A stretch of DNA of 64,000 nucleotides from Mobula birostris (lineage: Eukaryota), in contig NC_092383.1 in assembly GCF_030028105.1 (NCBI RefSeq), positions 97,301,604-97,365,603 of the forward strand. The letters are read 5' to 3'. Shown one piece after another: positions 1 through 56,693 of the stretch (the first letter of the stretch is position 1; every line of letters starts with the position of its first letter). The notes under the pieces were generated by a model. That model was not told where the DNA came from. It saw only the letters and a list, made by a program, of their open reading frames with translations, and did not search any database. The translations under genes and the position numbers were made by a program.

Positions 1-1179
1 CTTGCCTTGCCTCGCCTCGTCTCGTCTCACCTGAAGCCTTGCCTTGCCTCACTTTTAGACTCGCCTGAAGCCTTGCCTTGCCTCACCTTTAGACTCACCT
101 GAAGCCTTGCCTTGCCTTGCCTCGCCTGAAGCCTTGACTTGCCTGTATCCTTCGCCTGCACCGCTGTCAAGTTCAACTGCCGGAGCAAGATAAGGAACTG
201 GCTATCTAGTGTTGGAAACTGTCCCTCTATGTCCACGCCTTCACTAGGTAGGTCTGGCCGTTTGCCACTACCTAGTGTTGGGATCCGTCTCTGTGTTCAC
301 GCCTTCACTAGGTAGGTCCAGCTGTTTGCCACTACCTAGTGTTGGAAACTGTCTCGTTGTGTTCAGCATTCTGTGTATGAATTCTGGCCCTACGTCCTGT
401 TCGCAAGGAGGAGACCTGGCTCTGTGTTCCATGTCCCTGTGTTCCTGTCTCTCCCTTGACTAAGGCTTTGCGTTCCTGTCTCTCCCTCAACCAAGTCAAG
501 GCTTCCGCCTTTGTGTTCCAAGGTTCCTGTTTCCCTAGACCACGTCATGTCTTCGCCTAGTTCCAGAGTCCAAGCCCGAGTCAAGACCCAGGTTCTGGGT
601 CCTTGTCCAGTCTCTGGCTTAGAGTCAGAACCCAAGCCTCGTCATTTCCATGCCTTGAAGAAACCAAGCCTTGAGGAACCCAAGAACCTCATCTAGTCCA
701 AGGCACATCTAAGAACCTCATCTATTCCAGGTCCAGTGCAAGAACCTCATCTTGTCCAAGCCCAGTGCAAGAACCTCGTCTAGTCCAAGCCCAATCCAAG
801 AACCTTGTCTAGTCCAAGTCAAGGCTTTGTGTTCTCGTCCTGTGCAGGAGATCCATGTCCTGTCCTTGCCAAGATGCTTGTCTCGAGTCCTAGCCTAGAC
901 CCGGTTCTGGTTCCAAGTCAAAGCCGAGGTTCCAAGACCCACGCTCTGGGTTCTTGTCCAGGCACTTGTTTTGGAGTTCAGAGTCCTTGTCTAAGTTCCA
1001 AGTTCCTAGTTCCTCGTCCAGGTCCTGCTTTCCTAGTCATGTCCTAGCCCAAGTCTATGTTTTTGTCCCAGCTCCTAGTCTGCATCCAGTCCCGTCCCTA
1101 ACTCTAGTCTAGTTCCTTGTACATCAGCGTCTGTGTCTTGCGTTTGGGTCCACCACCACCACCACCCCCCGTTATGACA
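1..1179 (+). mobile_element. LTR-like repeat (3' part, runs off the window start) with internal simple and tandem repeats
   Basis: Low-complexity CCTTG/CTCGC and CCAAG/CTAGT repeats ending in ...GCGTTTGGGTCC...GTTATGACA (CA terminus at 1179), resembling fish Gypsy-type LTR ends from memory. No internal pol ORF seen. Confidence 0.4.
206..350. repeat. Tandem repeat of about 65 bp, each unit containing a 10-bp inverted repeat
   Basis: CTAGTGTTGG recurs at 206, 272 and 336. CACTAGGTAG (242, 306) is the reverse complement of CTACCTAGTG (268, 332). Confidence 0.75.
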
Positions 1180-1430
1180 GATTCCTTCTTCCCTAGCCCC
1201 TGATCTTTCCAACCCACCTGGCTTCATCTATCACCTTCCAGGTAGTCTCCTTCCCCTCTGCCCAGCTTTCATTCTGCTATCTTCCCCCTTCTTTCTCAGT
1301 CCTGAAGAAGAGTCTCAGCACAAAACATCGACTGTTTACTCTTGTCCATAGATGCTGCTTGACCTGCTTGCATTCCAATAGCATTTTGTGTGTGTTGCTT
1401 TGGATTTCCAAATTCTGCAGACTCTCTCAT
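1180..1430 (+). mobile_element. Penelope-like element 3' end remnant with degenerate hammerhead motif
   Basis: AGTCCTGAAGAAGAGTCTCAGCACAAAACATCGACT at 1298-1333, followed by GATGCTGC...TTGGATTTCCAAATTCTGCAG, matching the Penelope termini elsewhere in this window. Confidence 0.55.
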
Positions 1431-1838
1431 GATTATAACCTCACATATTCCCACATGACTCTTCATTTGTAAGATCCTTTCACATTCATTTAATCTGTCT
1501 GTACTCGATTATAATCAACCTAGTGCCTTTTACAACTTGGTCTCTGATTTCATTTGTTCCCATCATCCAAGTCATGTTAACATTTGCCAATAAGTGGAGA
1601 CCTCACTATGACTGCTGTGACTCACTGCTTGTCATTTCTTACCCATTGATGCCTATGGTGATTCCTTCCAATACATTACACACTTCTCTGCAAACTCTTC
1701 TTCTCCAATAATCTTTGTTGCAGCATTTAACCAAATAACTCCCAGGAACGTAATTAGCTTGCACCGTTTCCTTTCCAGGAAGCTGGTCACTATTTCCCTT
1801 CTTGTTCAAATTGAGGCATCAAAAGCCATATCCCTTTC

Positions 1839-2452
1839 TCAAAGAACACTGAGGCTGTCTACAAGAAGGGTCAGAGCCGTCTCTATTTCCTGAGGAGACT
1901 GAGGTCCTTTAACATCTGCTGGACGATGCTGAGGATGTTCTATGAGTCTGTGGTGGCCAGTGCTATCATGTTTTCTATTGTGTGCTGGGGCAGCAGGCTG
2001 AGGGTAGCAGACACCAACAGAATCAACAAACTCATTCGTAAGGCCAGTGCTGTTGTGGGGATGGAACTGGACTCTCTGACGGTGGTGTCTGAAAAGAGGA
2101 TGCTGTCTTAGTTGCATGCCATCTTGGTCAATGTCTCCCATCCACTGCATAATGTACTGGTTGGGCACAGGAGTACATTCAGCCAGAGACTCATTCCACC
2201 GAGATGCAGCACAGAGCATCATAGGAAGTCATTCCTGCCTGTGGCCATCAAACTTTACAACTCCTCCCTTGGAGGGTCAGACGTCCTGAGCCAATAGGCT
2301 GATCCTGGACTTACTTCATAATTTACTGGCATAACTTACATATTACTAATTAACTATTTATGGTTCTATTACTATTTATTATTCATGGTGCAACTGTAAT
2401 GAAAACCAATTTCCCCCGGGATCAATAAAGTATGACTATGACTATGACTACT
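1839..2452 (+). mobile_element. Rex1/Babar-like LINE, 3' end of ORF2 plus tail
   Basis: Post-RT peptide LRRLRSFNIC..MLRMFYESVVASAIMFSIVCWGS...SFLPVAIKLYN with an internal stop, then AATAAA and a (GACTAT)n tail. Confidence 0.7.
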
Positions 2453-2479
2453 ATTCAGTGAATTTCTATGGCTCCAGTA

Positions 2480-2836
2480 TATTTCATGTAGATTCCAAAT
2501 GAAATTTCATTCTTTGCATTTTTAATCCAGCCACACTACAAGAAAGTATGTGAGAAAGATTGTGCTGACATTGGAGAGGTTTCAAAGGAGGTTCACTCAA
2601 GTAATTCTGGGAGTGAAAGGCTTATCATAAGAGGATCACTTGGTGGCTATGGGCCTTTCTCACTGGAGTTCAGAAGAATGGGGGGATCTCACTGAAACCG
2701 ATCAAATGGTAAAAGTCCTCGATAGAGGTGATGTGGAGAGGATGTTTCCTATGGTGGAGGAGTCAATTATACTAAAATGGCAGAACAGACTAGATGGGCC
2801 AAATGGCTTAATTCTGCACCTATATATTATGGTCTT
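2480..2836 (+). mobile_element. CR1 LINE 3' fragment, degenerate
   Basis: Homologous to the CR1 C-terminal region seen in other copies (..GDLTETDQMVKVLDRGDVERMFPMVEES..). Confidence 0.6.
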
Positions 2837-3151
2837 GTGTGAGCACGTGGCCAAGTGGTTAAGGCATTGGACTAGCTACCTGAAGGTCGTGAGTTCGAAC
2901 CCCAGCCGAGGCAGCGTGTTGTGTCCTTGAGCAAGGCACTTAACCACACATTACTCTGCGACAACACTGGTGCCAAGCTGTATGGGTCCTAATGCCCTTC
3001 CCTTGGACAACATCGGTGTCGTGGAGAGGGGAGACTTGCAGCATAGGCAACTGCTGGTCTTCCCTGCAACCTTGCCCAGGCCTGCGCCGTAGAGAGCGAA
3101 GACTTTCCAGGCACAGATCCATGGTCTCGCAAGACTAACGGATGCCTTTTT
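2837..3151 (+). mobile_element. tRNA-derived SINE with 14-bp target-site duplication
   Basis: A-box TGGCCAAGTGG at 2848, B-box GTTCGAACCC at 2893, T-run tail, flanked by TATATTATGGTCTT at 2823-2836 and 3152-3165. Confidence 0.8.
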
Positions 3152-3289
3152 TATATTATGGTCTTAAAAGAGTTCAGGAAATGAAAGTCCATTTACAGCT
3201 CTGATTTTTGAATTTTCTTTGCATTGAGAAAGTAATCTTTTTTTTAATCTCTCCTAGCAAAGTGCATAACCAAACATTGCTCAACACTA

Positions 3290-6200
3290 TTCCATCTGCC
3301 ACTTCTTTGCCCATTTTCCTAATCTGCCAAAATCCTTCTCTGGACTGTCTGCTTTCTCAACATTACCTGCTCTTTCATCCTTCATCTGTCTTCATGTCAG
3401 CCGCAGACTTGGCCACAAAGCCATCAATTCCATCATCTAAATCATTGACATATAACATAAAAAGAATCGGTCCCAATATTGACCCATGGGGAACACCACT
3501 AGTCACTGGCAGCCAACCAGAAAAAGCTTCCTTTATTCTCACACTTTGCCTCCTGTCAATCAGTCACTGTTTTATTCATGCTAGTACGCAACATCCATTG
3601 ATTCTTCATTGTCTATCCTGTTTATTTTTTCTTCAAAGAATTCCAACAGATTTTCGCTTAAAGAAACTATGCGGACTATGGCCTATTTTATCATGTACAT
3701 CTTCCTAACCTCTGAGTTCAGACCAAATGGCCTATAATTTCCTTTCTTCTGTCTCCCTCTCTTTCTGAAGAGTGGATTGACATTTGCAATTTTCCAGTCA
3801 TCCAGGACCACGCCAGAATCCAGTGATTCTTGAAGGATCATTAGTAATCCCACCACAATCTCTTCAGCCCACCTCTTTCAAAACCCTGGGGTGTACACTG
3901 TCTCATCCAGGAGATTTATCTACCCTCAGGTTTTTGAGTTTCCCATGAACCTCCTCCCTAGTAATGGCAACTTGATTCATTTCTGTCCCCTGACACTCTT
4001 GAACATCCGATATACTGCTTGTGTCTTCCACAGTGAAATGATGTAAAGCATTTATTCATTTCATTGTGCCCCATTACTACATCGCCAACATCACTTTCCA
4101 ATGGTCCGATACCTACTCTCACCTCTCTTTTACACTTTATGTATCTGAAGATACTTTTGTTATCCTTTTTAATATTATTAGCTAGCTTACATTCATATTT
4201 GTATATCCTTTCTTTATGATTTTAGTTGATTTTTGAAAGCTTTCCAATCCTCTAACTTACCACTAATTTTTGTTGTATTATATGTCTTTTGCTTTTATGT
4301 TGGCTTTGAATTATCAGTCGCTGCTGTGTCATCTTCCCTTTAGAATACCTCTTCTTCTTTGGGATGTATCTATCCTGTGAATTCCGCCTTGCTCCCAGAA
4401 ACTCCAGCCTTTGCTGATCTACTGTCCTCCCTGCTAGTGTCCCCTTCCCATGATCGTGGGCCAGCTTGGCTCTATTGAATCTGTAATTCCCTTCACTCCC
4501 CTGTAATGCTGATACAATTGACTTAGCTGCTCTTTCTCAAACTGCAGAGTGAATTCTATCATATTATGAACACCTCTGCCAAAGGGTACAGTTCCTTAAG
4601 TTCCCTATTCAAACCTGTTCATTACACAACACCTTGTCCAGAATAACTGATCCCTGACTGGGCTCAATCACAAGCTGCACGAAAAAGCCATCTCATAGGC
4701 ATGCTACAGATTCTCTCTCTCGGGACCCAAAATCATCATCATTCTGATTTTCCCAAACTATTTGCGCATTGAAATCCCCCATGAGTGTTGTAGTATTGAC
4801 CTTCTGACATGCATTTTCAATCTCTCATCGATATTTGTACCCCTCGTCCTAGCTACTGTTCAGAGTTCTGCATGTAACTCCCATCAGGATCTCTTAACCC
4901 TTGCAATTCCTCAGCTCTGCCCACAACAATTCAATACCTTCCGACCCTATGTCACCTCTTTCTGATTATCTTATTTTATTTTTTACCAACACACCAATGC
5001 CACGCTCTCTGCCAACCTGTCTGTTTTTTTATTGATAAAATGTGTATCTTTGGTTGTTAAACTTTCAACTTTTATCTTTTATCAATAACTCCGTAATGCC
5101 CACAACCTCATACCTGACAATCTCTAAATGCACGACAAGATCATCCACATTATTGCATATACGGTGTACATTCAAATATAACACCTTCAGTCCTGTATCC
5201 ATCACCCTTTTTGGTTTTGTTCCCTGTTACACTGCAAATCATCCGACTGACTGTAATTTTGCTCTATTATGTGTCTGTTCTTCCTGACAGTCTCACTGCA
5301 CAATGCATTTAGTTGTATACCAATTAGCCCATCGTCAGCCCTATCACACTGGTCCCATCCCACTGTCAAATTATTTTAAATCCTCTCCAACAGATCTAGC
5401 AAAACCTGCCCATAAGGATATTGGTTCCCCTCAGGTTTATGTTTAACCCATCCTCTTTGTACAGGTCATAACTTCTCCAGAAGAGACCCCCGATTTAGAA
5501 ATCTGAAACCCTACCCCCTGCACCAGTTGCTTACCCACACATTCATCTGCCATACCATCCACTGGTGAGTGGCATAGGCAGCAATCCAGAGACTACAACC
5601 TTGGCGATCCTGCTTTTCAACTTTCTACCTAGCTCCTGAACTACTCTCTTCAGGACATGTCACCTTTCCTACCTACTGTATGTCATTGATGCCAATATGT
5701 GCCAAGGCTTCTGGCTAATTATCCTCCCCTTTTATAATGCCATGAGCTCAATCCGAGACATTCCTGACTCTGACACTTGGGATACAACATATTATCTGGG
5801 TGTCTCCATCACATCCACAGAATCTTATGTCTACTCCTCTAAGTGTGGAATTCCCTATCACTACTGGAATGCCCTTCTCTCTCGTACCCTCATGAGTCAC
5901 AAAGCCAGACTCAGTACCAGGGACCCGGTCACTGCAGCTTCCACTGGTAGATTATCCCCCCCAGTAGTATCCAAAGCAGTACACTTACTATTGAGGGGAA
6001 CGGACACAGGGATACATTTTACTGTCTGCCCATTTCCATTCCATTTCCTGACAGTCACCCAAGTACCTGCCTCCTGCAACGTTGAGGCGACTACCTCTCT
6101 GTAGCTCCTATTTATCATCTCCTCAGTTTCCCGTGTGAGCTGCAGCTTCAGTTCCCTCACATGATCTTTGAGGAGCTTCAACTCGGTGCACCTGGTGCAG

Positions 6201-6530
6201 ATGTGGTAGTCCAGGAGGCTGGAGGCCTCCCAGAATTCCCACATCTCACATAAAGAACACAACACAGCCTGTGGCGCCATTCTCACTGCTCTAGCTGTGC
6301 ACTAACAGACAAAGAACGAAGAACGATGAGGAAACTTACCAGATATGTACCATATACAATCCTGCTCTCAACAAAGGCTGATGAGCCAAAGCCTCCCCAC
6401 TCTAACACTGGTCAGCTGCAACAACGGCTGCTCCGCTTGGCCCTACCTTATTTTTATTTGCCCTTGCTAATGAATCACTACTTGATTGGGCCACAGGAAA
6501 AACGGAAAAAGCTTGTGAATGCTCCTTTTT
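3290..6530 (-). mobile_element. CR1 LINE, old and deleted, spanning ORF1 to the RT region
   Basis: ORF1-like MAPQAVLCSLCEMWE...CTRCTELKLLKDHVRELKLQL at 5897-6286, plus RT motif remnants (reverse strand of TSGVPQGSILGP near 3460-3510). Many stops. Confidence 0.7.
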
Positions 6531-6539
6531 AAATTTCAC

Positions 6540-7140
6540 TCATAAGTTTGTGATGGCTTCTCTCTTGTTTCCGATTCGATTATGCCACTGGAAAAACCCA
6601 GACTGACCTGAAAAGAATCCCGCACAAGAACTCCCAAGTCCCTTTGCATCCCTGATTTCGGAATTTTCTCCCCATTTAGAAAATACTCTACACCTTTATT
6701 CCTTCTACCAAAATGGAAGACCGTATGCTTTCCTGCTCTACATTCCATCCACCACTTCTTTGACCACTCTCCAAATCTGTCCAGGTCTCTCTGCAAACTC
6801 CCTGTTTCCTCTACACTACCTACCCTTACATCTTTCTTTGTATCATCACAAACATGCCACAAAGCCAGCAATTTCATCATCCAAATCACTGACATATAAT
6901 GTGAAAAGTCTCAGTCCTGACACCCAGCTGAACTCCATTAGTCAGTGCAACCAATCAGAGAAGGCCCTTTTTATGCCAGCTTTTATACATACTTTGATAA
7001 TAAATGTACTTTGAATCTTTGAATCTTGACAGTCTTGAATTTCTGGCATACTGCTAGTGTCTTCCGCAGTGAACAGTGATGCAAATTATTTCCTGAGTTT
7101 GTCCTCCGTTTCTTTGACCCCATTACTACCTCTCCAGTAT
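6540..7140 (-). mobile_element. CR1 RT fragment
   Basis: DDTK...LQRDLDRFGEWSKKWWME...HFGRRNK...QRDLGVLV in ORF 6536-6895. Confidence 0.75.
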
Positions 7141-7775
7141 CACTACTTACTGCAGTCCTATGTTAGCAACATGTTAATATAGTGGTTAGTGTGATGCTAT
7201 TACACCTCATGGCGTCGGAGTTTACCGTTCCTCATTTACCTGTGTCCTCATTTTCCTTATCAATCTGGCTGTTTCAAGCTGAATATTGTCCCATATTGTC
7301 TCACCTTTTGAATGGTTATTGGATTTGTTGGATTTCATTTTTATCAATCCAGTTACAGCTGCAAACTACTTCTAATCACTTTTACTCTCATAAATTCAAA
7401 AGAGTCATAGATCAAGGAACTGAATCCTTTGGAAACAAATCTGCACCAAATAATCAAACTTGTATTAATTCCAAACTAAGGTTATTTTTGTCTCCCTGCA
7501 GGCACTTCAACTCGTCTCAGATGCTACCGTTCACTGTAATTTACAGCCAATTGACCTACACGTCTTTGTGACATAGGAAGGAACTGGAATGGCTGGAGGA
7601 AAAACAATTAATGGGCTGAATGGCCTCCTCCTGATCCTAATTCCCATGTTTTGATGTTCTCCCTCCAATGGGAACCCATTAAATCTGGGGTGGAGGCGAT
7701 TTCTCAGCCAGATATTGCTGAGTTAGGTTATTGTGAATGTGATATTACTGTTAGAGTGAGTCAGGAACCATATTA

Positions 7776-8345
7776 ATAGAAACATAGAAACATAGAAAAT
7801 AGGTGCAGGAGTAGGCCATTCAGCCCTTTGAGCCTGCACCGCCATTCAGTATGATCATGGCTGATCATCCAACTCAGAACCATGTACCAGCCTTCCCTCC
7901 ATACCCCCTGATCCCTTTAGCCACAAGGGTCATATCCAACTCCCTCTTAAATATAGCCAATGAACTGGCCTCAACTGTTTCCTGTGGCAGAGAATTCCAC
8001 AGATTCACCACTCTCTGTGTGAAGAAGTTTTTCCTAATCTTGGTCCTAAAAGGCTTCCCCTTTATCCTCAAACTGTGACCCCTCATTCTGGACTTCCCCA
8101 ACATCGGAAACAATCTTCCTGCATCTAGCCTATCCAATCTCTTTAGGATTTTATACATTTCAATAAGATCCCCCCCTCAATCTTCTAAATTCCAATGAAT
8201 ATAAGCCTATTCGAACCAGTCTTTCATCGTATGAAAGTCCTGTCATCCCAGGAATCAATCTGGTGAACCTTCTTTGTACTCCCTCTATGACAAGGATGTC
8301 TTTCTTCAGATTAGGGGACCAAAACTGCACACGATACTCCAGGTA
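7776..8345 (-). mobile_element. CR1 3' end, same subfamily as 46359-46930
   Basis: EYRVQFWSPNLKKDILVIEGVQRRFTRLIPG...; tail reads (TTTCTATG)n on the minus strand. Confidence 0.85.
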
Positions 8346-9199
8346 CTTGATAGTGTTCACATTACAATAATTAGCCAGCTGGTGCTGTAGTGGCATCTGC
8401 ACAGGATATCAAGGCAAGTGGGTCTAGGTTCGAGTCTGGCTGGCTCCTTGCTTGCTTTCCATCCATGCTGGGTTGAACATCAAGCTAGCAACTAGGCCTT
8501 GTTAAAAAATGACAAATGCTAAAGAGATGACAAGATTGCTGCCTGTTGCGTCACAAGGCGCAGAGAGGAATGACAACATTACAATAATTACCTGGCTTTT
8601 ACACTTTCACAATTGTTTACCAATAACCTATTTTCTTTGTGGTATTTGATCCTCATTGTATCTCCATCTCCATTGGAGTTGCTTCTATCTGCCTGATGAA
8701 TGGAACTTTGCCTTCATTTGCTCAAAGTCAGTTTCCCATCCTCTCGGCAACTAGGTGTCAAGTTCAAATCTAATTATCTTTGAACCAAACACAAATATAG
8801 CCAAACAAAACAGTGTTTCTCTAGAGCCAAGGTACAAAACACATTACCAACAGCACACAGCACGGAATGTCCTGCAGCACAAGTGGTTACCATATAACAC
8901 ACCCGAATCCAGGTAAGGGTCAACAAAAGTGGTTGCCACAGGATACTCCAACAAAAATCCACAAATAGATCACACATCCAATGTGTTGATCAACCCAATC
9001 CTTTGGGCATGGGAAAGTATCAGACTTTACCCATTTTACAGCAAGACCCTGCTGGCAGCTTGTGTTCCAAAGCTTCCTCGCTCTCTCTCTCTCTCTCCTT
9101 ACTACTCAATATCCCAGCGGTCCATCGCAGCTTGTTATACTGACATCATAGCCCCGCCTCATCCAGCCTTTTTAAAGTGACACTCACAGTAAACGAAAC

Positions 9200-10250
9200 A
9201 GTGGTCACATGACATGTGAGCTCAATCGCAGTCTGCTGCGGGAGACAGACCTGAGAGATCTCACACCCCACGGATCAGAATAAAGCTCCACAGTCCCCTC
9301 ACATCTGGTCATGAACAACAGCTGATGGGCGGTGCAGTCTCCATAAACATCCACTCCCTCACTGACAGTAAGACCCAGCATGTGAGTGCCAGAGACAAGG
9401 CTGATCATTCACATCCATGTTCAGACAGAAGTGCTGAGTGGATGATCTCCCTCAGCTTCCTCCTGAGATCCCCCATCACAGAAACCAGTCTCCAGACAAT
9501 TCAGTTCATTCCCTGTGATATCAGATTACTGGATACAGCAACAACTATGGGACCAGACTACACCCAAGGTGTGGTACTGAAGACCAGTGCCACAGAACTA
9601 TGTGGATCTCTGTGCGAGTTGTTCCCGTACAGGTACATCATTGGCATCCCCTGACAATGTGGTTTTCTCGGATCCGGTCCTGTCCTCAACCCTGGGCTGA
9701 TCTCAGAGAAACCACCTGCTCTGAGACTTGGGGGAGCTGGACAGGAGGAAGAAGGGATAGAGGTGGATACTTCATTTTTGATGGAATCTCTGCATCCCTC
9801 AATGAAGGAGAAGGAGGTGACCTTCCTCCGAGGTGGAGGTTGCCCTGAGGTGCAGGAACCACGTGGTGGGGAAGTTGGCTCCTTCAGGGTGCCAAGGTCC
9901 ACACTGTGTTGTGGGAGTTGACTACGGGAGGGTGCCACCTTCTTCCCCTGTCATGGCCACAGTCTAAAGGAGGACACCGTCCCGAAGAGAAGGGACTGGG
10001 GAGACTCTCGGGATACAAACTCCTCTGTACATCAGGGTGATGCAACCATGATTCTTTTGCAAGGAAACCACTCTTTTCATCTCCATCAACGATGGCAATT
10101 ATCGCATCCTCTGGGGGAATTTCAGCTCCACCACTGGTACACAGTGGCCGCTGTGTGTACCTGTCAATGTCACTGCAGATACTCAGACAAGCTACTCCAA
10201 CCAACCCTCCCAAACTCGCCACCTCTACCCCCAAGAATGAATGTCTTGGA
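9200..10250 (+). mobile_element. Possible highly decayed Tx1/L1-clade ORF1 region
   Basis: Frameshifted pieces (SATELCGSLCELF; VRVVPVQVHHWHP; WGSWTGGRR) loosely resemble ZCCHC3-like Tx1 ORF1 motifs. Judged by eye only. Confidence 0.3.
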
Positions 10251-10370
10251 CACGGACAATCAGGCAGTGGGGTTCAGTAAAGAGTGGAATGGCCAGGATC
10301 TCCGTTCACCCATCAACTAGGATGTTTCAGGAACTGGTAAAACCCAGGCCCCTCGCCGCGTCTCACTCAC

Positions 10371-10673
10371 GGTTCTCTTCCGGTCGCACTCTCGCCTTAA
10401 GTTCAGCTCCAGAACCCTCAGCAATTTCCACCTCATAATCACCAGCATCCTCTCTCTGTAGATCACGGATTTCCAGACTGAAGTTCCCGGGATGAAGAGT
10501 TATCCGTCGCTTGTACTCCTCAGTACCGAAGTGGGAAATAGTCCCATTTTTATATTCTGCTACTGTGATTCCATTCGATCTCCACATCACCTGGGAAACA
10601 TCCAGCCCGACTGTGATCCCAGCAGGTAGGTAGACCAACTGTCTCCGTGCTCCTTTCACGGTTCGCATCCATT
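10371..10673 (-). CDS. CD2/SLAM-family V-set Ig exon V1 (gene A region)
   Basis: Acceptor ..GCTGACTGCCTCCTCTTGTCTCCTCAG| and donor |GTGAGT; 303 nt, phase 1-1. WMRTVKGARRQLVYLPAG...VMWRS...KRRITLHPGNFSLEIRDLQREDAGDYEV has the C-strand W and DxGxY motif and no B/F cysteines, as in CD2-type D1 domains. Confidence 0.8.
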
Positions 10674-11164
10674 CTGAGGAGACAAGAGGAGGCAGTCAGC
10701 AGGTGAGCTCAGTGACTGGAGCAGGAATCAGAGTGAGGAGGGTGTTGGGAGGATGTTTCCCCTCCTGTGGGATCTAGAACAAGGGCACAGTTTCAGAATA
10801 AGGGACCATAATTTCAGATGGAGATGAGGAATGATTTCCCCTCTCCAAGGATCAGGAACCAGAGGAATTTTCTCCCCCAGAGAGGTGCTGAGTCACTGTA
10901 TTCAAAGCTGAGAGTGATATAATTCTGAGGGTAGTGATATCTTTAAACATCATTACCTGTCATCTGTATGCCTGGAATTGCATGGGTTAAATTGAGAGTG
11001 TTTACTGGGAATTAGATATCACTACATCTTGGTAATGGCTTGTTTTCTGTGGACCCAGCTTGGGTTTAACTTACTGGTTCTCTCTCGCATTTTAATCTGA
11101 AGAGGAGTCGGGGATAGGGGGGGTTGTTGCTCGCCACCGCTTATGCGTAGGAAAGGGGAGCTGG

Positions 11165-11400
11165 GGGGGGGCGGGGGCAGTCTTAGTGGTTCTTACAATC
11201 GAATTCCCACTGCCCGTAAGGAGTTTGTACATTCTCCCCGTGTCCACGTGGGATTCCTCTGCATGCTCTGGTTTCCTCCCACAGTCCAAACATGTACCGA
11301 TTGGATGGTGAATCGGTCATTACAAATTGTCCTGTGATTAGGCTGGGTTACAATCGGGGGATTGCTGGGCAGTGTGGTTCAAATCCCGGAAAGGACTATT
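11165..11400 (+). mobile_element. HE1/V-SINE-like SINE fragment
   Basis: GTTTGTACATTCTCCCCGTGTCCACGTGGGATTCCTCTGCATGCTCTGGTTTCCTCCCACAGTCCAAA resembles the V-SINE central domain. Confidence 0.55.
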
Positions 11401-12585
11401 CCCTTCTCTTTCTCGATAAAATCTAAAAAAAACTCAAATAAAAAGTGTCTAATACCGGAGATGGTGCATTTACAGTGACAGGGGTAAATTCAAAGGAGAT
11501 GTGCAGGACAAGTTTTTCTTCACACAGAGAGTGGGGGTGGGAGCCTGAAATGGGCTGTCTGGAGTGGTGGCAGAGGCAAAGGCCAGAGAGATTTCTGAGA
11601 GGCTGTCAGATACACACATGTATGTGTAGAGAATAAAGGCATATGGAACACGAACAGTCAGAAGGGATTAGCTTAACTGGGTTCCATTAGCAATGAGTTT
11701 GGCAGCACATCATGAGCTGAGGAGCTGTTCCTATGATGTTCCATTCTCCACGTTCTGACATTCTCCCCCCTCCAATGGGACCCGTTAAACCTGGGGTGGA
11801 GGAGATTTCTCAGACAAATGTTGCTGAGTGAGGTAATTGTGAATGTGATATTACTGTTAGAGTGAGTCAGGAACCATATTGCTGTGTGTGAGTGTGCTGT
11901 TGTGTCCGTGTACTGTCACTCACTGGGACATTATATTCAGTGTAATGAACACACAGGGTCTCATTCAGCACAGCACAGCATGAAGGCTGAGGAATAAACA
12001 CCTTGCTGAGCTCAGACCTCAGTTTGGGGAATTAACAAGCACTGCTCTGGGAAATAGCCAGGACAACTGGGATTCCTGAACATGACAGACCAGGTACAAG
12101 AATTGAGCTACTAGAGAAATTGGATTCAGGCAGAATGTGTGCAGGAAAAGGGATAGCAGACATATCAGGTTGAGACCCTTCATCTAGACTCAAATAAGGG
12201 GATACAGCCAATATAATGAGGTGAAGCAAGAGCTGGATTCAGGTGGGGAGGAGATGATTTGTAGATGGAGCCACATGGGGAAGGTAAGGGTGGAATAGTG
12301 ACACGTTAGAGATCATGTCATCGGGCTGTAGATGACTCAGGTGGAATGTGAGGTGCTGTTCTTCAAATTTTCATCAGGCTTGGAGGTGGTTGGATGGAGA
12401 AGATAGATTGCTGTGGGAATGGTAAGGAAAAAGAAATCAGCTTGCAAACAGGAGCTCCATGGCCATTGTGGACACCTAAGCAGTTGTCTAGACTGAGCCT
12501 AGTGTCACCAACGTACCCTGACACTCTATTTAAGGGTGTTTCAGTAATGGGTGAAACCCAGGCCCCTCCACGATGTCTTACTCAC

Positions 12586-12906
12586 CGTACACCTCCAGTC
12601 GCACTGTCGCTTGAGTCTCAGATCCTGAACTTGCTGTAACAGTCACCTCATAAACACCAGAATCTTCTCTCTGTAGATCACAGATTTCCAGACAGAAGCT
12701 ACTTGGATGAAGAGTTATCCATTGTTTTATCTCCTCAGAACCAAAGTATGTAATATTTCCCTTCAAATATTGTGCAATCATGATTTTGGAGGATCTCTGG
12801 CTCCACTGAACCTCAGTAACTTTCGATCTGTTGTTGATTCCAGCAGATAACAAGACCGAGTGTCCCCGAGCTCCGCTCACCGTGGTGGGGGGAGCCTCAG
12901 TCGCAG
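12586..12906 (-). CDS. CD2/SLAM-family V-set Ig exon V2 (gene A)
   Basis: Same acceptor motif as V1 and V3; donor GTGTACG|GTGAGT; 321 nt, phase 1-1. ATEAPPTTVSGARGHSVLL...VQWSQ...LQREDSGVYEVTV...VRLEVY. Confidence 0.85.
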
Positions 12907-13559
12907 CTGAGGAGACAAGAGGAGACCGTCAGCAGGTGAGCTCAGAGACTGAAGGAGGAATCGGAGCTGGGTTAATCACAGACACAGGAGCAGACCATGT
13001 AACCCATCATCTGGCTTCTGTCCCTGGGAGAGACCCAGCGCACAGTTCCCACACACAAAGTAAGTGCAACAAAGTTCAAGATTCAAGTCCAAAGTTTAAA
13101 GTTCAAAGTAAATTTATTGTCAAAGTATGTACTGTACACATTATTCAGACTTGGGATTTGTCTCCTCACAGAGAGCCACAAAACAAAGAGCCCCCAAACC
13201 TCATTAAAAACAGACCATCAGATACCCTACCGGCAGAGAAAAAAAACTAGTGCAAACAATTTAAGTGAGCAAATAGCATTTAGATCTGAAGGGCAGACCA
13301 CAGCTTCAGTTCCAACAAGTTACAGGGAGAGACTGAATAATCTGGATTGTTTTCCCTTGAACGAAGGAGACTGAGTGATGACTGATAGAAGTAAAAAAAT
13401 TGCAGGAAATCAGTGAGTTAGGTATAACTTGGAGGCAAAAACTCTTGGTTCAGATGTAGGAACATAACCTGAACCTCTCTTTGCCTTCCGATGCCAAGTA
13501 CCCAGCAATTTTGATGTATACTTTAGATTCCGAGCTCTGCAGTCTTTTTGTCACCTGAA

Positions 13560-15567: not shown

Positions 15568-16428
15568 NNNNNNNNNNNNNNNNNNNNNNNNNNNNNNNNN
15601 NNNNNNNNNNNNNNNNNNNNNNNNNNNNNNNNNNNNNNNNNNNNNNNNNNNNNNNNNNNNNNNNNNNNNNNNNNNNNNNNNNNNNNNNNNNNNNNNNNNN
15701 NNNNNNNNNNNNNNNNNNNNNNNNNNNNNNNNNNNNNNNNNNNNNNNNNNNNNNNNNNNNNNNNNNNNNNNNNNNNNNNNNNNNNNNNNNNNNNNNNNNN
15801 NNNNNNNNNNNNNNNNNNNNNNNNNNNNNNNNNNNNNNNNNNNNNNNNNNNNNNNNNNNNNNNNNNNNNNNNNNNNNNNNNNNNNNNNNNNNNNNNNNNN
15901 NNNNNNNNNNNNNNNNNNNNNNNNNNNNNNNNNNNNNNNNNNNNNNNNNNNNNNNNNNNNNNNNNNNNNNNNNNNNNNNNNNNNNNNNNNNNNNNNNNNN
16001 NNNNNNNNNNNNNNNNNNNNNNNNNNNNNNNNNNNNNNNNNNNNNNNNNNNNNNNNNNNNNNNNNNNNNNNNNNNNNNNNNNNNNNNNNNNNNNNNNNNN
16101 NNNNNNNNNNNNNNNNNNNNNNNNNNNNNNNNNNNNNNNNNNNNNNNNNNNNNNNNNNNNNNNNNNNNNNNNNNNNNNNNNNNNNNNNNNNNNNNNNNNN
16201 NNNNNNNNNNNNNNNNNNNNNNNNNNNNNNNNNNNNNNNNNNNNNNNNNNNNNNNNNNNNNNNNNNNNNNNNNNNNNNNNNNNNNNNNNNNNNNNNNNNN
16301 NNNNNNNNNNNNNNNNNNNNNNNNNNNNNNNNNNNNNNNNNNNNNNNNNNNNNNNNNNNNNNNNNNNNNNNNNNNNNNNNNNNNNNNNNNNNNNNNNNNN
16401 NNNNNNNNNNNNNNNNNNNNNNNNNNNN
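15568..16428. other. Assembly gap (861 N)
   Basis: Run of N; the ORFs crossing it are artefacts. Confidence 0.99.
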
Positions 16429-16999: not shown

Positions 17000-17160
17000 C
17001 TCTCCCCGTACGTTCTCACCATGACCTCGTGGGTTTCCTTTGGGTGCTCTGGTTTGCTCCCATAGTCCGAGGATCTATCGATCAGTTGGTCGCTGTAAAT
17101 TGTTCCATGATCAGGCGAGGGTTTGCAGGGCAGCCTGAAGGGATAGGAAGGCCTATTCTG
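17000..17160 (+). mobile_element. HE1/V-SINE-like fragment
   Basis: CGTTCTCACCATGACCTCGTGGGTTTCCTTTGGGTGCTCTGGTTTGCTCCCATAGTCC, homologous to 11220-11290. Confidence 0.5.
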
Positions 17161-23514: not shown

Positions 23515-23841
23515 TTAGCGGAAGTTAGAGAAGTCGATGTTCATGCCATCAGGTTGGAGGCTACCCAGACGGAATATAAGGTGTTGTTCCTCCAACCTGA
23601 GTGTGGCTTCATCTTTACAGTAGAGGAGGCCGTGGATAGACATGTCAGAATGGGAATGGGATGTGGAATTAAAATGTGTGGCCACTGGGAGATCCTGCTT
23701 TCTCTGGCGGACAGAGCGTAGATGTTCAGCAAAGCGGTCTCCCAGTCTGCGTCGGGTCTCGCCAATATATAGAAGGCCACATCGGGAGCACCGGACGCAG
23801 TATATGATCCCAGCCGACTCACAGGTGAAGTGTTGCCTCAC
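23515..23841 (-). pseudogene. Penelope GIY-YIG endonuclease domain (5'-truncated element)
   Basis: GIIYCVRCSRCGLLYIGETRRRLGDRFAEH...RLEEQHLIFRLGSLQPDGMN. Confidence 0.9.
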
Positions 23842-24197
23842 CTGGAAGGACTGTTTGGGGCTCTGAATGGTGGTAAGGGAGGAAGTGTAAGGGCATGTTT
23901 AGCACTTGTTCCGCTTACAAGGATAAGTGCCAGGAGGGAGATCGGTAGGGAGGGATGGGGGGTGCCGAATGGACAAGGCAGTCGCGTAGGGAGCGATCCC
24001 TGCGGAAAGCGGAGGGGGGGGGGAGGGAAAGACGTGCTTAGTGGTGGGATCCCGTTGGAGGTGGTGGAAGTTACGGAGAATAATATGTTGGACCCGGAGG
24101 CTGGTGGGGTACTTATCCTTGTAAGCGGAACAAGTGCTACACATGCCCTTACACTTCCTCCCTTACCATCATTCAGGGCCCCAAACAGTCCTTCCAG

Positions 24198-24524
24198 GTG
24201 AGGCGACACTTCACCTGTGAGTCGGCTGGAGTGGTATACTGCGTCTGGTGTTCCCGGTGTGGCCTTCTATATATTGGTGAGACCCGACGCAGACTGGGAG
24301 ACCGCTTTGCTGAACACCTTCGCTCTGTCCGCCAGAGAAAGCAGGATCTCCCAGTGGGCACACATTTTAATTCCACATCCCATTCCCATTCTGACATGTC
24401 TATCCACGGCCTCCTCTACTGTAAAGATGAAGCCACACTCAGGTTGGAGGAACAACACCTTATATTCCGTCTGGGTAGCCTCCAACCTGATGGCATGAAC
24501 ATCGGCTTCTCTAACTTCCGCTAA
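24198..24524 (+). pseudogene. Penelope GIY-YIG endonuclease domain (inverted copy)
   Basis: GVVYCVWCSRCGLLYIGETRRRLGDRFAEH..., near-identical to 23515-23841. Confidence 0.9.
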
Positions 24525-42159: not shown

Positions 42160-45100
42160 GCTGGTGAATGGTGAGGTGGAGACACATCTCTAACAAAGGA
42201 GGTGCAAGGAGCTCCTTCCCTCCACTCGCCTGCAGGTGAACCTTGGATAAGCTGTAGCATCTACTTAGCGACATCCCCCCGGCCTCTGGCCCTGATCAGG
42301 CTCACGTGAAGCCATGGGATCAGGCGATGGTTGGTCAGATGAGCAGCTGGTGCATATCACAAGTCCTGGTTATGTGACCACTAACTCCAGGCAGAGAATC
42401 TCTGAAGAATATTGATAATGGATGGCGTCACACATCTTAGAACATAGAACATAGAATAGTACAGCACAGTACAGGTCCTTCGGCCCACAATGCTGTGCCG
42501 ACCCTCAAAGCCTGCCTCCCATATAAGCCCCCACCTTAGATTCCTCCATATACCTGTCTAGTAGTCTCTTAAACTTCACTAGTGTATCTGCCTCACCACT
42601 GACTCAGACAGTGCATTCCACACACCAACCACTCTCTGAGTAAAAAATCTTCCTCTAATATCCCCCTTGAACTTCCCACCCCTTACCTTAAAGCCATGTC
42701 CTCTTGTATTGAGCAGTGGTGCCCTGGGGAAGAGGCGCTGGCTATCCACTCTATCTATTCCTCTTATTATCTTGTACACCTCTATCATGTCTCCTCTCAT
42801 CCTCCCTCTCTCCAAAGAGTAAAGCCCTCGCTCCCTTAATCTCTGATCATAATGCATACTCTCTAAACCAGGCAGCATCCTGGTAAATCTCCTCTGTACC
42901 CTTTCCAATGCTTCCACATCCTTCCTATAGTGAGGTGACCAGAACTGGACACAGTACTCCAAGTGTGGCCTAACCAGAGTTTTATAGAGCTGCATCATTA
43001 CATTGCGACTCTTAAACTCTATCCCTCGACTTATGAAAGCTAACACCCCATAAGCTTTCTTAACTACTCTATCCACCTGTGAGGCAACTTTCAGGGATCT
43101 GTGGACATGTACCCCGAGATGCCTCTGCTCCTCCACACTACCAAGTATCCTGCCATTTACTTTGTACTCTGCCTTGGAGTTTGTCCTTCCAAAGTGTACC
43201 ACCTCACACTTCTCCGGGTTGAACTCCATCTGCCACTTCTCAGCCCACTTCTGCATCCTATCAATGTCTCTCTGCAATCTTTGACAATCCTCTACACTAT
43301 CTACAGCACCACCAACCTTTGTGTCATCTGCAAAATTGCCAACCCACCCTTCTACCCCAACATCCAGGTCGTTAATAAAAATCATGAAAAGTAGAGGTCC
43401 CAGAACAGATCCTTGTGGGACACCACTAGTCACAATCCTCCAATCTGAATGTACTCCCTCCACCACAACCCTCTGCCTTCTGCAGGCAAGCCAATTCTGA
43501 ATCCACCTGGCCAAACTTCCCTGGATCCCATGCCTTCTAACTTTCTGTATAAGCCTACCGTGTGGAACCTTGTCAAATGCCTCACTAAAATCCATATAGA
43601 TCACATCCACTGCACTACCTTCATCTATATATGTCTGGTCACCTCCTCAAAGAACTCTATCAGGCTTGTTAGACATGATCTGCCCTTCACAAAGCCATGC
43701 TGACTGTCCCTGATCAGCCCATGATTCTCTAAATGCCCATAGATTCTATGTCTAAGAATCTTTTCCAACAGCTTTCCCACCACAGTCGTAAGGCTCACGG
43801 GTCCAAATTACCCGGACTATCCCTACTACCTTTTTGAACAAGGGAACAACATTCGCCTCCCTCCAATCCTCCGGTACCATTCCCGTGGACAACGAGGACA
43901 TAAAGATCCTAGCCAGAGGCTTAGCAATCTCTTCTCTCACCTCGTGGAGCAGCCTGGGGAATATTCCGTCAGGCCCCGGGGACTTATCTGTCCTAATGTA
44001 TTTTAACAACTCCAACACCTCCTCTCCCTTAATATCAGCATGCTCCAGAACATCAACCTCACTCAGACTGTCCTCACCATCATCAAGTTTCCTCTCATTG
44101 GTGAGTACCGAAGAGAAGTATTCATTGAGGACCTCGCTCACTTCCACAGCCTCCAGGCACATCTTCCCACCTTTATCTCTAATTGGTCCTACCTTCACTC
44201 CTGTCATCCTTTTTTTCTTCACATAATTGAAGAATGCCTTGGGGTTTTCCTTTACCCTACTCGCCAAGGCCTTCTCATGCCCCCTTCTTGCTCTTCTCAG
44301 CCCCTTCTTAAGGTCCTTTCTTGCTTCCCTATATTCCTCAATAGACCCATCTGATCCTTGCTTCCTAAACCTCATGTCTGCTGCCTTCTTCCTCCTGACT
44401 AGATTTTCCACCTCACTTGTCACCCATGGTTCCTTCACCCTACTATTCTTTATCTTCCTCACCAGGACAAATTTATCCCTTACATCCCGCAAGAGATCTC
44501 AAAACATCGACCGCATGTCCATAGTACATTTCCTTGCAAAAACATCATTCCAATTCACACCCGCAAGTTCTAGCCTTATAGCCTCATAATTTGCCTTTCC
44601 CCAATTAAAAATTTTCCTGTCCTCTTTGATTCTATCTTTTTCCATGATAATTATAAAGGCCAGGGAGCGGTGGTCACTGTCCCCCAGATGCACACCCACT
44701 GAGAGATCTGTGATCTGACCCGGTTCATTACCTAGTACTAGATCTAGTATGGCATTCCCCCTGGTCGGCCTGTCGACATACTGTGACAGGAATCCGTCCT
44801 GGACACACTGAACAAATTCTGCCCCATCTAAACCCTTGGAACTAATCAGGTGCCAATCAATATTAGGGAAGTTAACGTCACCCATGATAAGAACCCTGTT
44901 ATTTTTGCACCTTTCCAAAATCTGCCTCCCAATCTGCTCCTCTGTATCTCTGCTGCTACCAGGGGGCCTATAGAATACCCCCAGTAGAGTAACTGCTCCC
45001 TTCCTGTTCCTGACTTCCACCCATATTGACTCAAAAGAGGATTCTGCTACATTACCCACCCTTTCTGTAGCTGTAATAGTATCCCTGACCAGTAATGCCA

Positions 45101-45720
45101 CCCCTCCTCCGCTTTTTCCGCCCTCTCTATCCCTTTTAAAGCACTGAAATCCAGGAATATTGAGAATCCATTCCTGCCCTGGTGCCGGCCAAGTCTCTGT
45201 AATGGCCACTACATCAAAATTCCATGTATGTATCCAAGCTCTCAGTTCATCACCTTTGTTCCTGATGCTTCTAGCATTGAGATACACACATTTCAGCCCT
45301 TCTACCTTACTGTCTTTACACCGTTTATTCTGCTTCTCTTTCCTCAAAGCCTCTCTGTATGTTAGATCTGGCTTTACTCCATGCACTTCTTTCACTGCTC
45401 TATTGCTCTGGGTCCCATCCCCCTCGCAAATTAGTTTAAACCCTCCTGAACCATGCTAGCAAGCCTACCTGCAAGGATATTGCTCCCCTTCGAGTTCAGG
45501 TGCAACCCATCCAATCTGTACAGGTCCCACCTTCCCCAGAAGAGATCCCAATGATCTAAAAATCTAAAACCCTGCTCCTGCTCTTCTAAAAACACTGTCC
45601 AGAAGAAGGCAATGGCAAGCCACTTCTGTAGAAAACATTGCCAAGAACAATCATGGTCAAAAACCATGATCGCCCACATCATACAACACGGCACACAGTG
45701 ATGATGATAATGATGTTGAT
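42160..45720 (+). mobile_element. RTE-type SINE split by a CR1 (pieces 42160-42438 and 45582-45720)
   Basis: The 3' piece CCAGAAGAAGGCAATGGCAAGCCACTTCTG...CACGGCAC..(GAT)n resembles RTE-derived SINE tails and reads contiguously with ..GTCACACATCTT when the CR1 is removed. Confidence 0.5.
42439..45581 (-). mobile_element. Relatively young CR1 LINE: ORF1 end plus complete but disabled ORF2
   Basis: APE (VYLNARSIRNK..ITETW..GDVNFP..SDH) at 44499-45395, one in-frame stop, linker at 43752-44492, frameshift, RT (AFDKV, GVPQGSVLGP, FADDTK) at 42579-43610; (TTCTATG)n tail. Confidence 0.95.
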
Positions 45721-46358: not shown

Positions 46359-47935
46359 ACATAGAAACATAGAAACATAGAAAATAGGTGCAGGAGTAGG
46401 CCATTCAGCCCTTCGAGCCTGTACCGCCATTCAGTATGATCATGTCTGATCATCCAACTCAGAACCCTGTACCAGCCTTCTCTCCATACCCCCTGATCCC
46501 TTTAGCCACAAGGGCCATATCTAACTCCCTCTTAAATATAGCCAATGAACTGGCCTCAACTATTTCCTGCGGCAGAAAATTCCACAGATTCACCACTCTC
46601 TGTGTGAAGAAGTTTTTCCTAATCTCGGTCCTAAAAGGCTTCCCCTTTATCCTCAAACTGTCACCCCTCATTCTGGACTTCCCCAACATCGAGAACAATC
46701 TTCCTGCATCTAGCCTGTCCAATCCCTTTAGGATCTTATACGTTTCAATCAGATCCCCCCTCAATCTTCTAAATTCCAACGAGTACAAGCCTAGTCGATC
46801 CAGTCTTTCATCATATGAAAGTCCTGACATCCCAGGAATCAATCTGGTGAACCTCCTCTGTACTCCCTCTATGGCAAGAATGTCCTTCCTCAGATTAGGG
46901 GACCAAAACTGCACACAATACTCCAGGTGTGGTCTCACCAGGGCCTTGTACAACTGCAGTAGTACCTCCCTGCTCCTGTACCCAAATCCTCTCGCTATAA
47001 ATGCCAACATACCATTCGCCTTTTTCACCGCCTGCTGTACCTGCATGCCCACTTTCAATGACTGGTGTATAATGACACCCAGGTCTCATTGCACCTCCCC
47101 TTTTCCTAATCGGCCACCATTCAGATAATAATCTGTTTTCCTGTTTTTGCCACCAAAGTGGATAACATCACATTTATCTACATTAAATTGCATCTGCCAT
47201 GAATTTGCCCACTCACCCAACCTATCCAAGTCACCCTGCATCCTCTTAGCATCCTCCTCACAGCTAACACTGCCACCCAGCTTCGTGTCATCCGCAAACT
47301 TGGAGATGCTGCATTTAATTCCCTCATCGAAGTCATTAATATATATTGTAAACATCTGGGGTCCCAGCACTGAGCCTTGCGGTACCCCACTAGTCACTGC
47401 CTGCCATTCTGAAAAAGTCCCGTTTATTCCCACTCTTTGCTTCCTGTCTGCCAACCAATTCTCTATCCACATCAATACCTTATCCACAATACCGTGTGCT
47501 TTAAGTTTGCACACTAATCTCCTGTGTGGGACCCTGTCAAAAGCCTTTTGAAATTCCAAATACACCACATCCACTGGTTCTCCCCTATCCACTCTACTAG
47601 TTACATCCTCAAAAAATTCTATGAGATTCGTCAGACATGATTTTCCTTTCACAAATCCATGCTGACTTTGTCCGATGATTTCAACGCTTTCCAAATGTGC
47701 TGTTATCACATCTTTGATAACTGACTCTAAAATTTTCCCCACCACCGATGTTAGGCTAACCAGTCTATAATTCCCAGGTTTCTCTCTCCCTCCTTTTTTA
47801 AAAAGCGGTGTTACATTAGCCACCCTCCAATCCTCAGGAACTAGTTCAGAATGTAAAGAGTTTTGAAAAATTATCACTAATGCATCCACTATTTCTTGGG
47901 CTAATTCCTTCAGCACTCTGGAGCGCAGACCATCT
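46359..47935 (-). mobile_element. 5'-truncated young CR1 (RT domain to 3' end)
   Basis: ORFs 47086-47916 and 46459-47058 with NYRLVSLTSVVGK, GVPQGSVLGP and FADDTK; (TTTCTATG)n tail. Confidence 0.95.
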
Positions 47936-48094
47936 GCCCCTGGGGACAGAGAGAGCTAGGGGTACAATGATATAGCTCCCTGAAAGTGGCAGCTGTACGG
48001 GATAATGAAGAAAGCATTTGGCACACTTACCTTCATCAGTTGGACCATTGCGGCAGCAGTTGGGTATCATGTTAAAACTGATGTAGATGTGAAC

Positions 48095-56531: not shown

Positions 56532-56693
56532 CATACTCTAAATCTTCTGCATTCTCAGGAACACAGTCATAACTTGTTCAATGTTTCCTGATAATTCAGG
56601 TCCACTGGACCCAGCAATTTTCTTTGTACCCCTTCAAGCTTGTTTACATCATTCCAACAGAACAGTGAGAAAGGCAGTGATTGACCTTGGATT

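Follow-up and report, generated by a model that had tools for sequence, protein, structure and literature searches.

The minus strand of the window (the whole 64-kb stretch of DNA that was analysed, from a manta-like ray) carries a predicted receptor gene of the CD2/SLAM family, within the immunoglobulin superfamily, which we call gene A. Two V-set exons of different kinds follow one another in this gene with no C2 exon between them. The upstream exon (V-up) would encode the N-terminal, ligand-binding V domain; the downstream exon (V-down) appears to belong to a class of 'internal V' exons. The explanation that we prefer, and to which we give a little less than an even chance, is that V-down is decaying and is left out of the transcript, or retained only now and then. 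Gene A begins with the leader, followed by V-up and then V-down; its later exons would lie beyond the left edge of the window. The features discussed below are the following.

12906-12586, minus strand: V-up (V2 in the earlier, sequence-only reading), V-set exon of the N-terminal type, 321 nt, phase 1-1
10673-10371, minus strand: V-down (V1 in that reading), V-set exon of the internal or membrane-proximal type, 303 nt, phase 1-1
17461-17395, minus strand: gene A leader exon, phase 1, with its ATG at 17461, a length of 22 codons and 1 further base, and a GT donor at 17394-17393
15568-16428: 861 consecutive N in the intron between leader and V-up, either a gap or masked sequence
12907-12966, minus strand: 3' intron end before V-up, with CTGAC branch-point motif, pyrimidine tract and AG
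10674-10740, minus strand: 3' intron end before V-down, with CTGAC, pyrimidine tract and AG, conserved
10674-12585, minus strand: intron between V-up and V-down, 1,912 nt, no coding exon
near 11180-11430: SINE-like insert in that intron
11743-12093: conserved block in the same intron
7613-7774, minus strand: block in the intron that follows V-down, with 88% identity to 11743-11880 and a further match to 58991-59130 in gene B
57492-57812, plus strand: V exon of gene B, the divergently oriented neighbour, used as comparator
62363-62629, plus strand: C2 exon of gene B, comparator, 267 nt, phase 1-1, with AG and GT sites, the only C2 exon in the 64-kb window

The coordinates of the sequence-only reading, which had placed two V exons with intact GT-AG sites and phase 1-1 on the same strand 1.9 kb apart, proved exact; the strand is the minus strand and the distance 1,912 bp. 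V-up is bounded by an acceptor AG at 12908-12907 and a GTGAGT donor from 12585, and V-down by an AG at 10675-10674 and a GTGAGT donor from 10370. Neither frame contains a stop codon, and that of V-down stays open for 110 codons and has no private indels. Each V exon is preceded by a branch-point-like CTGAC and a long pyrimidine tract, and the last 60 to 67 or so intron nucleotides before V-up, V-down and the gene B V exon are about 90% identical. One Ig domain per exon in phase 1-1 is the rule for V-up, V-down and the gene B C2 exon, and all exon combinations do stay in frame, as the earlier reading had it. The gene B V exon is the ortholog of Mobula hypostoma XP_062921216 (88% identity).

The assignment to the CD2/SLAM family had also been made before, and the profile and fold comparisons agree with it. 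In the 64 kb, a profile of family V domains detects V-up (E = 1.2e-47), V-down (E = 7.8e-46) and just one further V exon, that of gene B. The Pfam V-set model scores V-up at 48.7 bits and V-down at 23.7 bits, the latter below the cut-off of 26. Searched against the PDB, a profile of 20 family V domains, V-up and V-down included, matched CD48 (7.9e-11), SLAMF5 (1.3e-9) and CD2 (2.8e-8); the 14 top matches are all CD48, SLAMF5, CD2, CD58 or SLAMF6 (7.9e-11 to 1.8e-6), 2B4 is also among the first matches, and the V exons used singly gave weaker matches of about 1e-3. The AF2 model of V-down (pLDDT 87, from a method insensitive to point changes) has its best fold matches in the N-terminal V domains of CD48, CD58, 2B4, CD84 and CD2 (TM 0.75-0.88). 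The canonical B-F disulfide is absent from V-up, V-down and the gene B V domain, which lack Cys both in the B strand and in the Y-x-C position and read Y-E-V in the F strand.

The absence of a leader or C2 exon between the two V exons, another earlier claim, was upheld: the 1,912-bp interval contains 0 N, and neither an Ig-like ORF nor a match to the family C2 profile turned up in it, nor any ATG exon that resembles a leader and ends at a usable donor. The conserved intron block was considered as an alternative terminal exon and rejected, since the tails of secreted isoforms do not map there. The expectation of a C2 exon further to the left did not hold. In 1-10370 we could detect neither a C2 nor a TM or tail exon; tblastn with the peptide of the gene B C2 exon and with nine family C-termini gave no credible match left of V-down in the window; ten minus-strand ORFs on that side had no Pfam match; and the TM exon of the ray V-V-V-TM genes was not found downstream of V-down within the window. 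A 60-member C2 profile yielded two collinear minus-strand matches, at 9274-9149 and 8713-8591 (E = 0.2-0.3), but wrong-strand matches are equally good, and we dismiss these as noise. A membrane-proximal C2 after the V domain has no credible minus-strand match in 1-12585, and the ortholog of gene A described below has none either; gene B does have one, which the family C2 profile finds with E = 3.2e-32.

That ortholog, the only one annotated, is the M. hypostoma gene LOC134355872 (protein XP_062922449, P0008 in our set). Its V domain is 87% identical to V-up and its leader 84% identical to that of gene A, and in the tree V-up is the sister of the single P0008 V with 100/100 support; V-up and the leader are, by these measures, orthologous to this gene. 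The predicted architecture of P0008 is leader-V-stalk/TM-tail, with neither a C2 nor a second V, although this is a Gnomon model of an 'uncharacterized protein' that was compared as protein, so that an overlooked V-down there is possible. The tail is predicted to carry two switch motifs of the TxYxx[V/I] kind (ITSM), TIYAQA and TIYATV.

V-down is of a different kind from V-up. Its best matches are the third V domains of P0201 (78%), P0159 (75%) and P0158 (72%). Internal V domains are marked by an N-terminus four residues shorter, with an E/D-W-M/A start, and by the loss of two residues after the C-strand Trp; in the alignment both marks are found in V-down and in all second and third domains of three-V proteins, and both are absent from V-up and the gene B V. 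In a tree built from about 100 columns, V-down groups with membrane-proximal V domains in a clade of nine (100/98), but by the AU test two other placements are not rejected, one beside V-up (p = 0.11) and one beside the P0201 third V (p = 0.10). The intron blocks might suggest a recent tandem duplication of a single V exon. We set this origin aside as improbable, since V-down carries the internal-V indels and groups with that class, although the AU test does not formally reject it.

Exons of this class are always found directly after another V in the ray V-V-V-TM models and never after a leader in complete models; those models that start with an internal-type V all lack a leader. The predicted V-up to V-down junction, LEVY-E-WM.TVKGAR, is identical to the junction in P0158 and P0159, and LEVY-E-WM.TVKG recurs in ray V-V-V-TM and V-V-C2 gene models, in line with the earlier suggestion that the two V exons could be spliced directly. 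Because annotated ray V-V-V-TM proteins share this predicted junction, direct V-to-V joining appears to be part of the normal grammar of the ray family, in which a C2 need not follow. The earlier description of a V-V arrangement as atypical is correct relative to mammals only; among rays, NCBI models of at least five species have V-V. An annotated protein that pairs a V-up-like with a V-down-like domain was not found in the databases searched, and a length-limited search for short transcript-derived fragments containing V-down returned one unrelated short isoform only. P0195, which had been considered as a cluster member on metagenome contigs, was set aside: its peptide is unrelated and of low complexity, and the contigs contain no V exon.

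The V-down copy looks released from purifying selection. Among the 15 columns with a conservation of at least 95%, it deviates from the family at 3, a number that none of 71 annotated domains reaches, and its substitutions include G24R, Y64H, L115P and V117E (alignment columns), so that a Pro and a Glu, both private to V-down, stand in the G strand, the last of the domain. Four of its nine private substitutions lie in columns at least 90% conserved, compared with 62 of 583 in annotated domains (Fisher p = 0.012, in a test that was designed post hoc, after the data had been seen, and that rests on nine changes). The last exon base is C, whereas 118 of 127 family V ends precede a residue whose codon starts with G. 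The Pfam V-set score below the cut-off and the lack of V-down in the ortholog model point in the same direction. Because of these signs of relaxed constraint, V-down may add nothing to the protein. If it is indeed decaying, both V exons would still be part of a single minus-strand receptor gene, and V-down, whose counterparts in the ray V-V-V-TM genes would occupy the place that C2 has in mammals, would be skipped or present in a minority of transcripts. The main product of gene A would then be leader-V-TM-ITSM, as predicted for M. hypostoma.

Some observations speak against decay. The frame, branch-point motif, pyrimidine tract, AG and GTGAGT donor of V-down are intact and should be normally recognisable to the spliceosome. 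The terminal branch of V-down measures 0.16 and does not exceed what its functional sisters show from root to tip (0.20-0.35), dN/dS is not raised (0.57-0.68 for in-window pairs with V-down, 0.88 for V-up against the gene B V exon), and the AF2 fold is confident.

The same intact frame and splice signals, unaccelerated branch and confident fold would be expected if V-down were a working, constitutive exon, and this is the alternative that survives best. Gene A would then encode a two-V, C2-less receptor (leader-V-V-TM-tail), the internal V would be the spacer next to the membrane, the role given to such domains in the ray V-V-V-TM proteins, and its odd last strand would be a lineage-specific adaptation. 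The identity of the predicted junction with annotated V-V junctions fits this explanation, as does the inclusion of internal-type V exons in every complete model that has them. However, the ortholog is predicted without V-down, the type pairing of V-up with V-down is absent from annotated proteins, four private changes fall at near-invariant positions, the G-strand Pro and Glu among them, and the last exon base is not G. We regard a working two-V receptor as possible but doubtful.

Decay might also extend to the whole of gene A, with neither V in a working receptor and the tandem left as a fossil of exon shuffling in the cluster. V-up does carry R73W at a position where 99% of family domains, and also the ortholog, have Arg, and no gene A protein was found in the databases searched. 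The latter may merely reflect an unannotated assembly, though, and the leader and V-up are intact, with only one of the six private substitutions of V-up at a conserved column; a dying gene seems improbable to us.

The sequence-only reading had also proposed alternative use of the two V exons, the leader being joined to either V-up or V-down so that ligand-binding domains are swapped. The reading frame allows every such combination, and in-frame skipping of Ig exons is annotated in the family, in pairs of isoforms with and without C2 from three species. Against the swap, an internal-type V never follows the signal peptide in complete models, and V-down lacks four N-terminal residues that first-position V domains have, which leaves this proposal very unlikely. 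We give hardly any credence to an assembly artefact, or to V-down as a separate gene with its own leader, despite the N run in the leader-to-V-up intron and an ATG-initiated hydrophobic ORF at 12183-12087: the V exons are not a collapsed duplicate because they are only 52% identical in protein and about 71% in DNA, with 0 N between them; the ORF, rejected as a hidden leader, has a poor donor (GTCATG), shows no likeness to family leaders and is not within any block that gene B shares; and an upstream gene could not fit its C2, TM and tail exons into 1.9 kb.

In mammals the SLAM/CD2 ectodomain is fixed as V-C2, and its length is thought to set the spacing of immune-cell contacts. Rays appear freed from this rule, as ectodomains in public gene models consist of one, two or three V domains without a C2. 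The tandem V arrangement is already computer-predicted in related rays, and we found no literature on multi-V SLAM/CD2 receptors in cartilaginous fish. Shared phase and an intron end that is nearly identical over about 60 nt would ease the gain, loss and skipping of exons. It is conceivable, if rather less than probable, that gene A as a leader-V-V-TM-ITSM gene, with two tandem V, no C2 and an ITSM tail, is one product of a ray-specific shuffling of symmetrical V exons with conserved intron ends among clustered SLAM-like genes, which would have given rise to V, V-V, V-V-V, V-V-C2 and V-C2-V ectodomains; the leader-V-V-TM-ITSM combination is absent from annotated proteins. The extra internal V exon of gene A may still be in use or may be in the course of being lost. 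If used, it would mean that a double-V ectodomain is for the first time found together with a switch-motif tail; if unused, it would be a dated example of domain shedding in these genes. Either way the interest is modest and lies in comparative immunology, rather than in a new kind of system.

Among the closest known systems is LOC134355872 itself, which shares the orthologous leader and V-up, lies within the same ray SLAM-like cluster and spans 26.8 kb, a length consistent with later gene A exons beyond the window's left edge. It differs in that its single V is joined directly to the stalk/TM exon in the predicted protein. The ray V-V-V-TM proteins, which NCBI names 'T-lymphocyte surface antigen Ly-9-like' (XP_072887045 of Hemitrygon akajei and XP_059805903 of Hypanus sabinus; further examples are M. 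hypostoma LOC134355361 and LOC134355365, and M. birostris P0158), resemble gene A in a third V 72-78% identical to V-down, in the shared indels and junction, and in having no C2 between V exons. Their first V, however, is of the gene B type and not of the V-up type, and their short tail lacks an ITSM. Another parallel is offered by the SLAMF5-like isoforms X1 and X2 of M. hypostoma, H. akajei and H. sabinus, in which a symmetrical phase 1-1 Ig exon is omitted in frame, so that the skipped isoform is V-TM-ITSM, like the gene A ortholog; here the skipped exon is a C2 and not a V, and the two forms are annotated isoforms of one gene. Among mammalian receptors, the two-domain SLAM/CD2 proteins are V-C2 and Ly9/SLAMF3 is V-C2-V-C2, every V being followed by a C2. 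Gene A shares with them an N-terminal V without the canonical disulfide, one Ig domain per phase-1 exon, the ITSM in the tail of its ortholog, and a V whose fold and profile are nearest to CD48, CD84, CD2, CD58 and 2B4; it departs from them in that a V directly follows a V and in that its ortholog is without any C2.

Gene A, on the minus strand, carries two V exons, V-up and V-down, behind a leader exon.

Exons of gene A in the window and the run of N between them
17461-17395, minus strand: leader exon (ATG at 17461), phase 1, GT donor; precedes both V exons
15568-16428: run of 861 N in the intron between leader and V-up
12906-12586, minus strand: V-up, 321 nt; AG at 12908-12907, donor GTGAGT from 12585
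10673-10371, minus strand: V-down, 303 nt; AG at 10675-10674, donor GTGAGT from 10370

The tandem arrangement proposed by the sequence-only reading is confirmed in its coordinates, its AG and GT sites and its 1-1 phase. Both exons translate without a stop into domains of about 100 residues with the V-set landmarks (C-strand Trp, L-x-I-x-D-L and D-x-G-x-Y-E-V). A family V-domain profile picks out three V exons in the window and no others, namely V-up (E = 1.2e-47), V-down (E = 7.8e-46) and 57492-57812 on the plus strand in the neighbouring SLAM-like gene B, and the family C2 profile finds only the C2 exon of gene B at 62363-62629. The earlier claim that V-up and V-down are separated by no recognisable leader or C2 exon also holds, as the 1,912-bp interval contains no Ig-like ORF, no match to the family C2 profile and no credible leader; a hydrophobic ATG ORF at 12183-12087 was rejected as a hidden leader because it ends in a poor donor and is unlike any leader of the family. 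The interval is free of N, and the two V exons are only 52% identical in protein and about 71% in DNA; an assembly collapse is therefore excluded. The intron separating them also holds a SINE-like insert (11180-11430, minus strand), whose core looks similar to the one conserved among SINEs of fish and sharks; 17008-17090 holds a related piece of 83 nt.

Pfam V-set scores V-up at 48.7 bits and V-down at 23.7 bits, below the cut-off of 26. When a 20-domain family V profile was compared with solved structures, CD48, SLAMF5, CD2, CD58 and SLAMF6 came first (7.9e-11 to 1e-6), and an AF2 model with pLDDT 87, made for V-down, finds its best fold matches in the N-terminal V domains of CD48, CD58, 2B4, CD84 and CD2 (TM 0.75-0.88). 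In an exhaustive protein search, the relatives of V-up were ray proteins that NCBI names SLAMF5-, 8- or 9-like or Ly-9-like, from Mobula hypostoma, M. birostris, Hemitrygon akajei, Hypanus sabinus, Pristis pectinata and skates.

Judged by their sequences, V-up and V-down are to be classed as different kinds of V. The nearest matches to V-down are the third, membrane-proximal V domains of V-V-V-TM proteins (identity 78% for M. hypostoma LOC134355365, 75% for LOC134355361 and 72% for the M. birostris homolog), and V-down shares two indels with every second and third V of these proteins: an N-terminus four residues shorter, starting E/D-W-M/A, and a two-residue deletion after the Trp. The tree places it in a clade (support 100/98) made up of nine membrane-proximal V domains, all of them from Mobula or stingrays. 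The AU test, with only about 100 columns, does not reject other placements, among them one of V-down with V-up (p = 0.11), so that the shared indels carry much of the weight. We had initially thought of a single V exon duplicated recently in tandem, and dropped this in view of these indels and the clade.

Going by Gnomon models, direct V-to-V splicing is the normal grammar of the ray SLAM-like family, whose annotated architectures comprise V-C2-TM-ITSM, V-TM-ITSM, V-V-V-TM, V-V-C2, V-C2-V-TM and V-C2-V-C2. The V-V-V proteins are joined at LEVY-E-WM.TVKGAR, and the predicted splice 12586>10673 would give exactly the same joint. Gnomon also annotates a fourth-V isoform for one M. hypostoma gene, and, in three species, isoforms that keep or lack the C2 exon of a single SLAMF5-like gene (372 vs 276 aa): the annotated protein pairs P0165/P0167 in M. 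hypostoma, P0020/P0019 in H. akajei and P0166/P0169 in H. sabinus. In-frame skipping of Ig exons therefore seems conserved in the family.

Ahead of each V exon in the window, the final 60-67 nt of intron (12907-12966, 10674-10740 and 57426-57491) are about 90% identical, including CTGAC, a pyrimidine tract and the AG, and 50-125 nt of downstream intron are common to the three exons as well, although the exons are only about 71% identical and come from classes that separated long ago. Selection on the intron ends or gene conversion may account for this, and such ends would make it easier for exons to be shuffled through unequal recombination. Each of the three V exons is also followed, in the same orientation, by a copy of a further intron block, a conserved element or repeat.

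Copies of the intron block
11743-12093: about 500 bp past V-up
7613-7774: 2.6 kb past V-down
58332-58580 and 58991-59130: about 500 bp past the V exon of gene B

These copies are 86-88% identical to each other, well above the exons, have no Pfam match and correspond to no isoform tail.

Gene B lies about 40 kb from gene A in divergent orientation and runs past the right edge of the window; M. hypostoma LOC134355366, modelled as V-C2-V, contains the orthologs of its V exon (88% identical) and C2 exon. LINE ORFs with AP-endonuclease and reverse transcriptase domains occupy much of the space between the two genes, RT-like fragments also occur at 7877-8408 in the intron downstream of V-down, and an inverted pair of ORFs with a GIY-YIG nuclease domain looks like two Penelope-like retroelements.

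Mobile-element ORFs
23518-23898, minus strand: GIY-YIG ORF (Pfam E ~3e-5)
24084-24521, plus strand: near-identical GIY-YIG ORF, inverted and head-to-head with the former (Pfam E ~3e-5)
44502-45455, minus strand: LINE ORF
47089-47955, minus strand: LINE ORF
54562-56537, minus strand: LINE ORF

V-up and the leader are orthologous to XP_062922449 of M. hypostoma (87% and 84%; sisters with support 100/100), a predicted leader-V-stalk/TM-tail model with two TxYxx(V/I) motifs that has neither a C2 nor a second V. The 26.8-kb span of the ortholog's gene would put the later exons of gene A about 9 kb past the left edge of the window, and consistently the searches of 1-10370 detected neither a TM or tail exon nor a C2 exon. 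The C2 exon expected to the left of the window is supported neither by these searches nor by the ortholog model. Two sub-threshold C2-profile matches (9149-9274 and 8591-8713, minus strand, E = 0.2-0.3) are collinear, downstream of V-down and on the correct strand; we count them as noise, as wrong-strand matches are equally strong, but they may be a very degraded C2 relic.

We tentatively favour, at somewhat short of even confidence, the reading that V-down is a decaying exon, skipped or rarely included. Across 71 annotated domains, 15 columns are conserved at 95% or more; V-down departs at three of these (G24R, L115P and V117E, numbered by alignment column), more than any of the annotated domains, and also at Y64H; two of the changes place Pro and Glu in the last beta strand. 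Private substitutions hit columns conserved at 90% or more in 4 of 9 cases, vs 62 of 583 for annotated domains (Fisher p = 0.012, post hoc); the V-down ratio of four in nine is about the neutral expectation because 23% of columns are so conserved. The last base of V-down is C, whereas family proteins imply G at donor position -1, the codon of the next residue starting with G in 118 of 127 V-domain ends. Furthermore, the sole ortholog model is missing a V-down-type exon, and the pairing of V-up-type with V-down-type domains is annotated nowhere, as the exhaustive protein search found them together in no protein. The same observations make a true V-V receptor that includes V-down doubtful, although the exon retains a 110-codon open frame without private indels, intact splice signals, a terminal branch (0.16) not longer than its sisters' paths (0.20-0.35) and an in-window dN/dS of 0.57-0.68, no worse than V-up vs the V of gene B (0.88). 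That gene A as a whole is a dying copy is improbable; V-up itself carries R73W, a single CGG>TGG-type change at a D-strand Arg found in 99% of family V domains and retained by the M. hypostoma ortholog. Alternative use of V-down as first V, and with it the suggested swap of ligand-binding domains, is rated very low because an internal-type V follows a leader in no complete model. An artefact or a separate gene is scarcely credible.

We found no description of multi-V SLAM/CD2 receptors of cartilaginous fish in the literature; the multi-V, C2-less SLAM-like architecture is already in the databases as computer predictions from several ray genomes. By analogy with established SLAM/CD2 biology, the N-terminal V would make the trans contact, the second domain would be a spacer setting ectodomain length, and the tail ITSMs would recruit SH2 adaptors. 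Skipping V-down would then yield a one-domain, short-span receptor like XP_062922449, and including it a two-domain receptor with a V in place of the C2.
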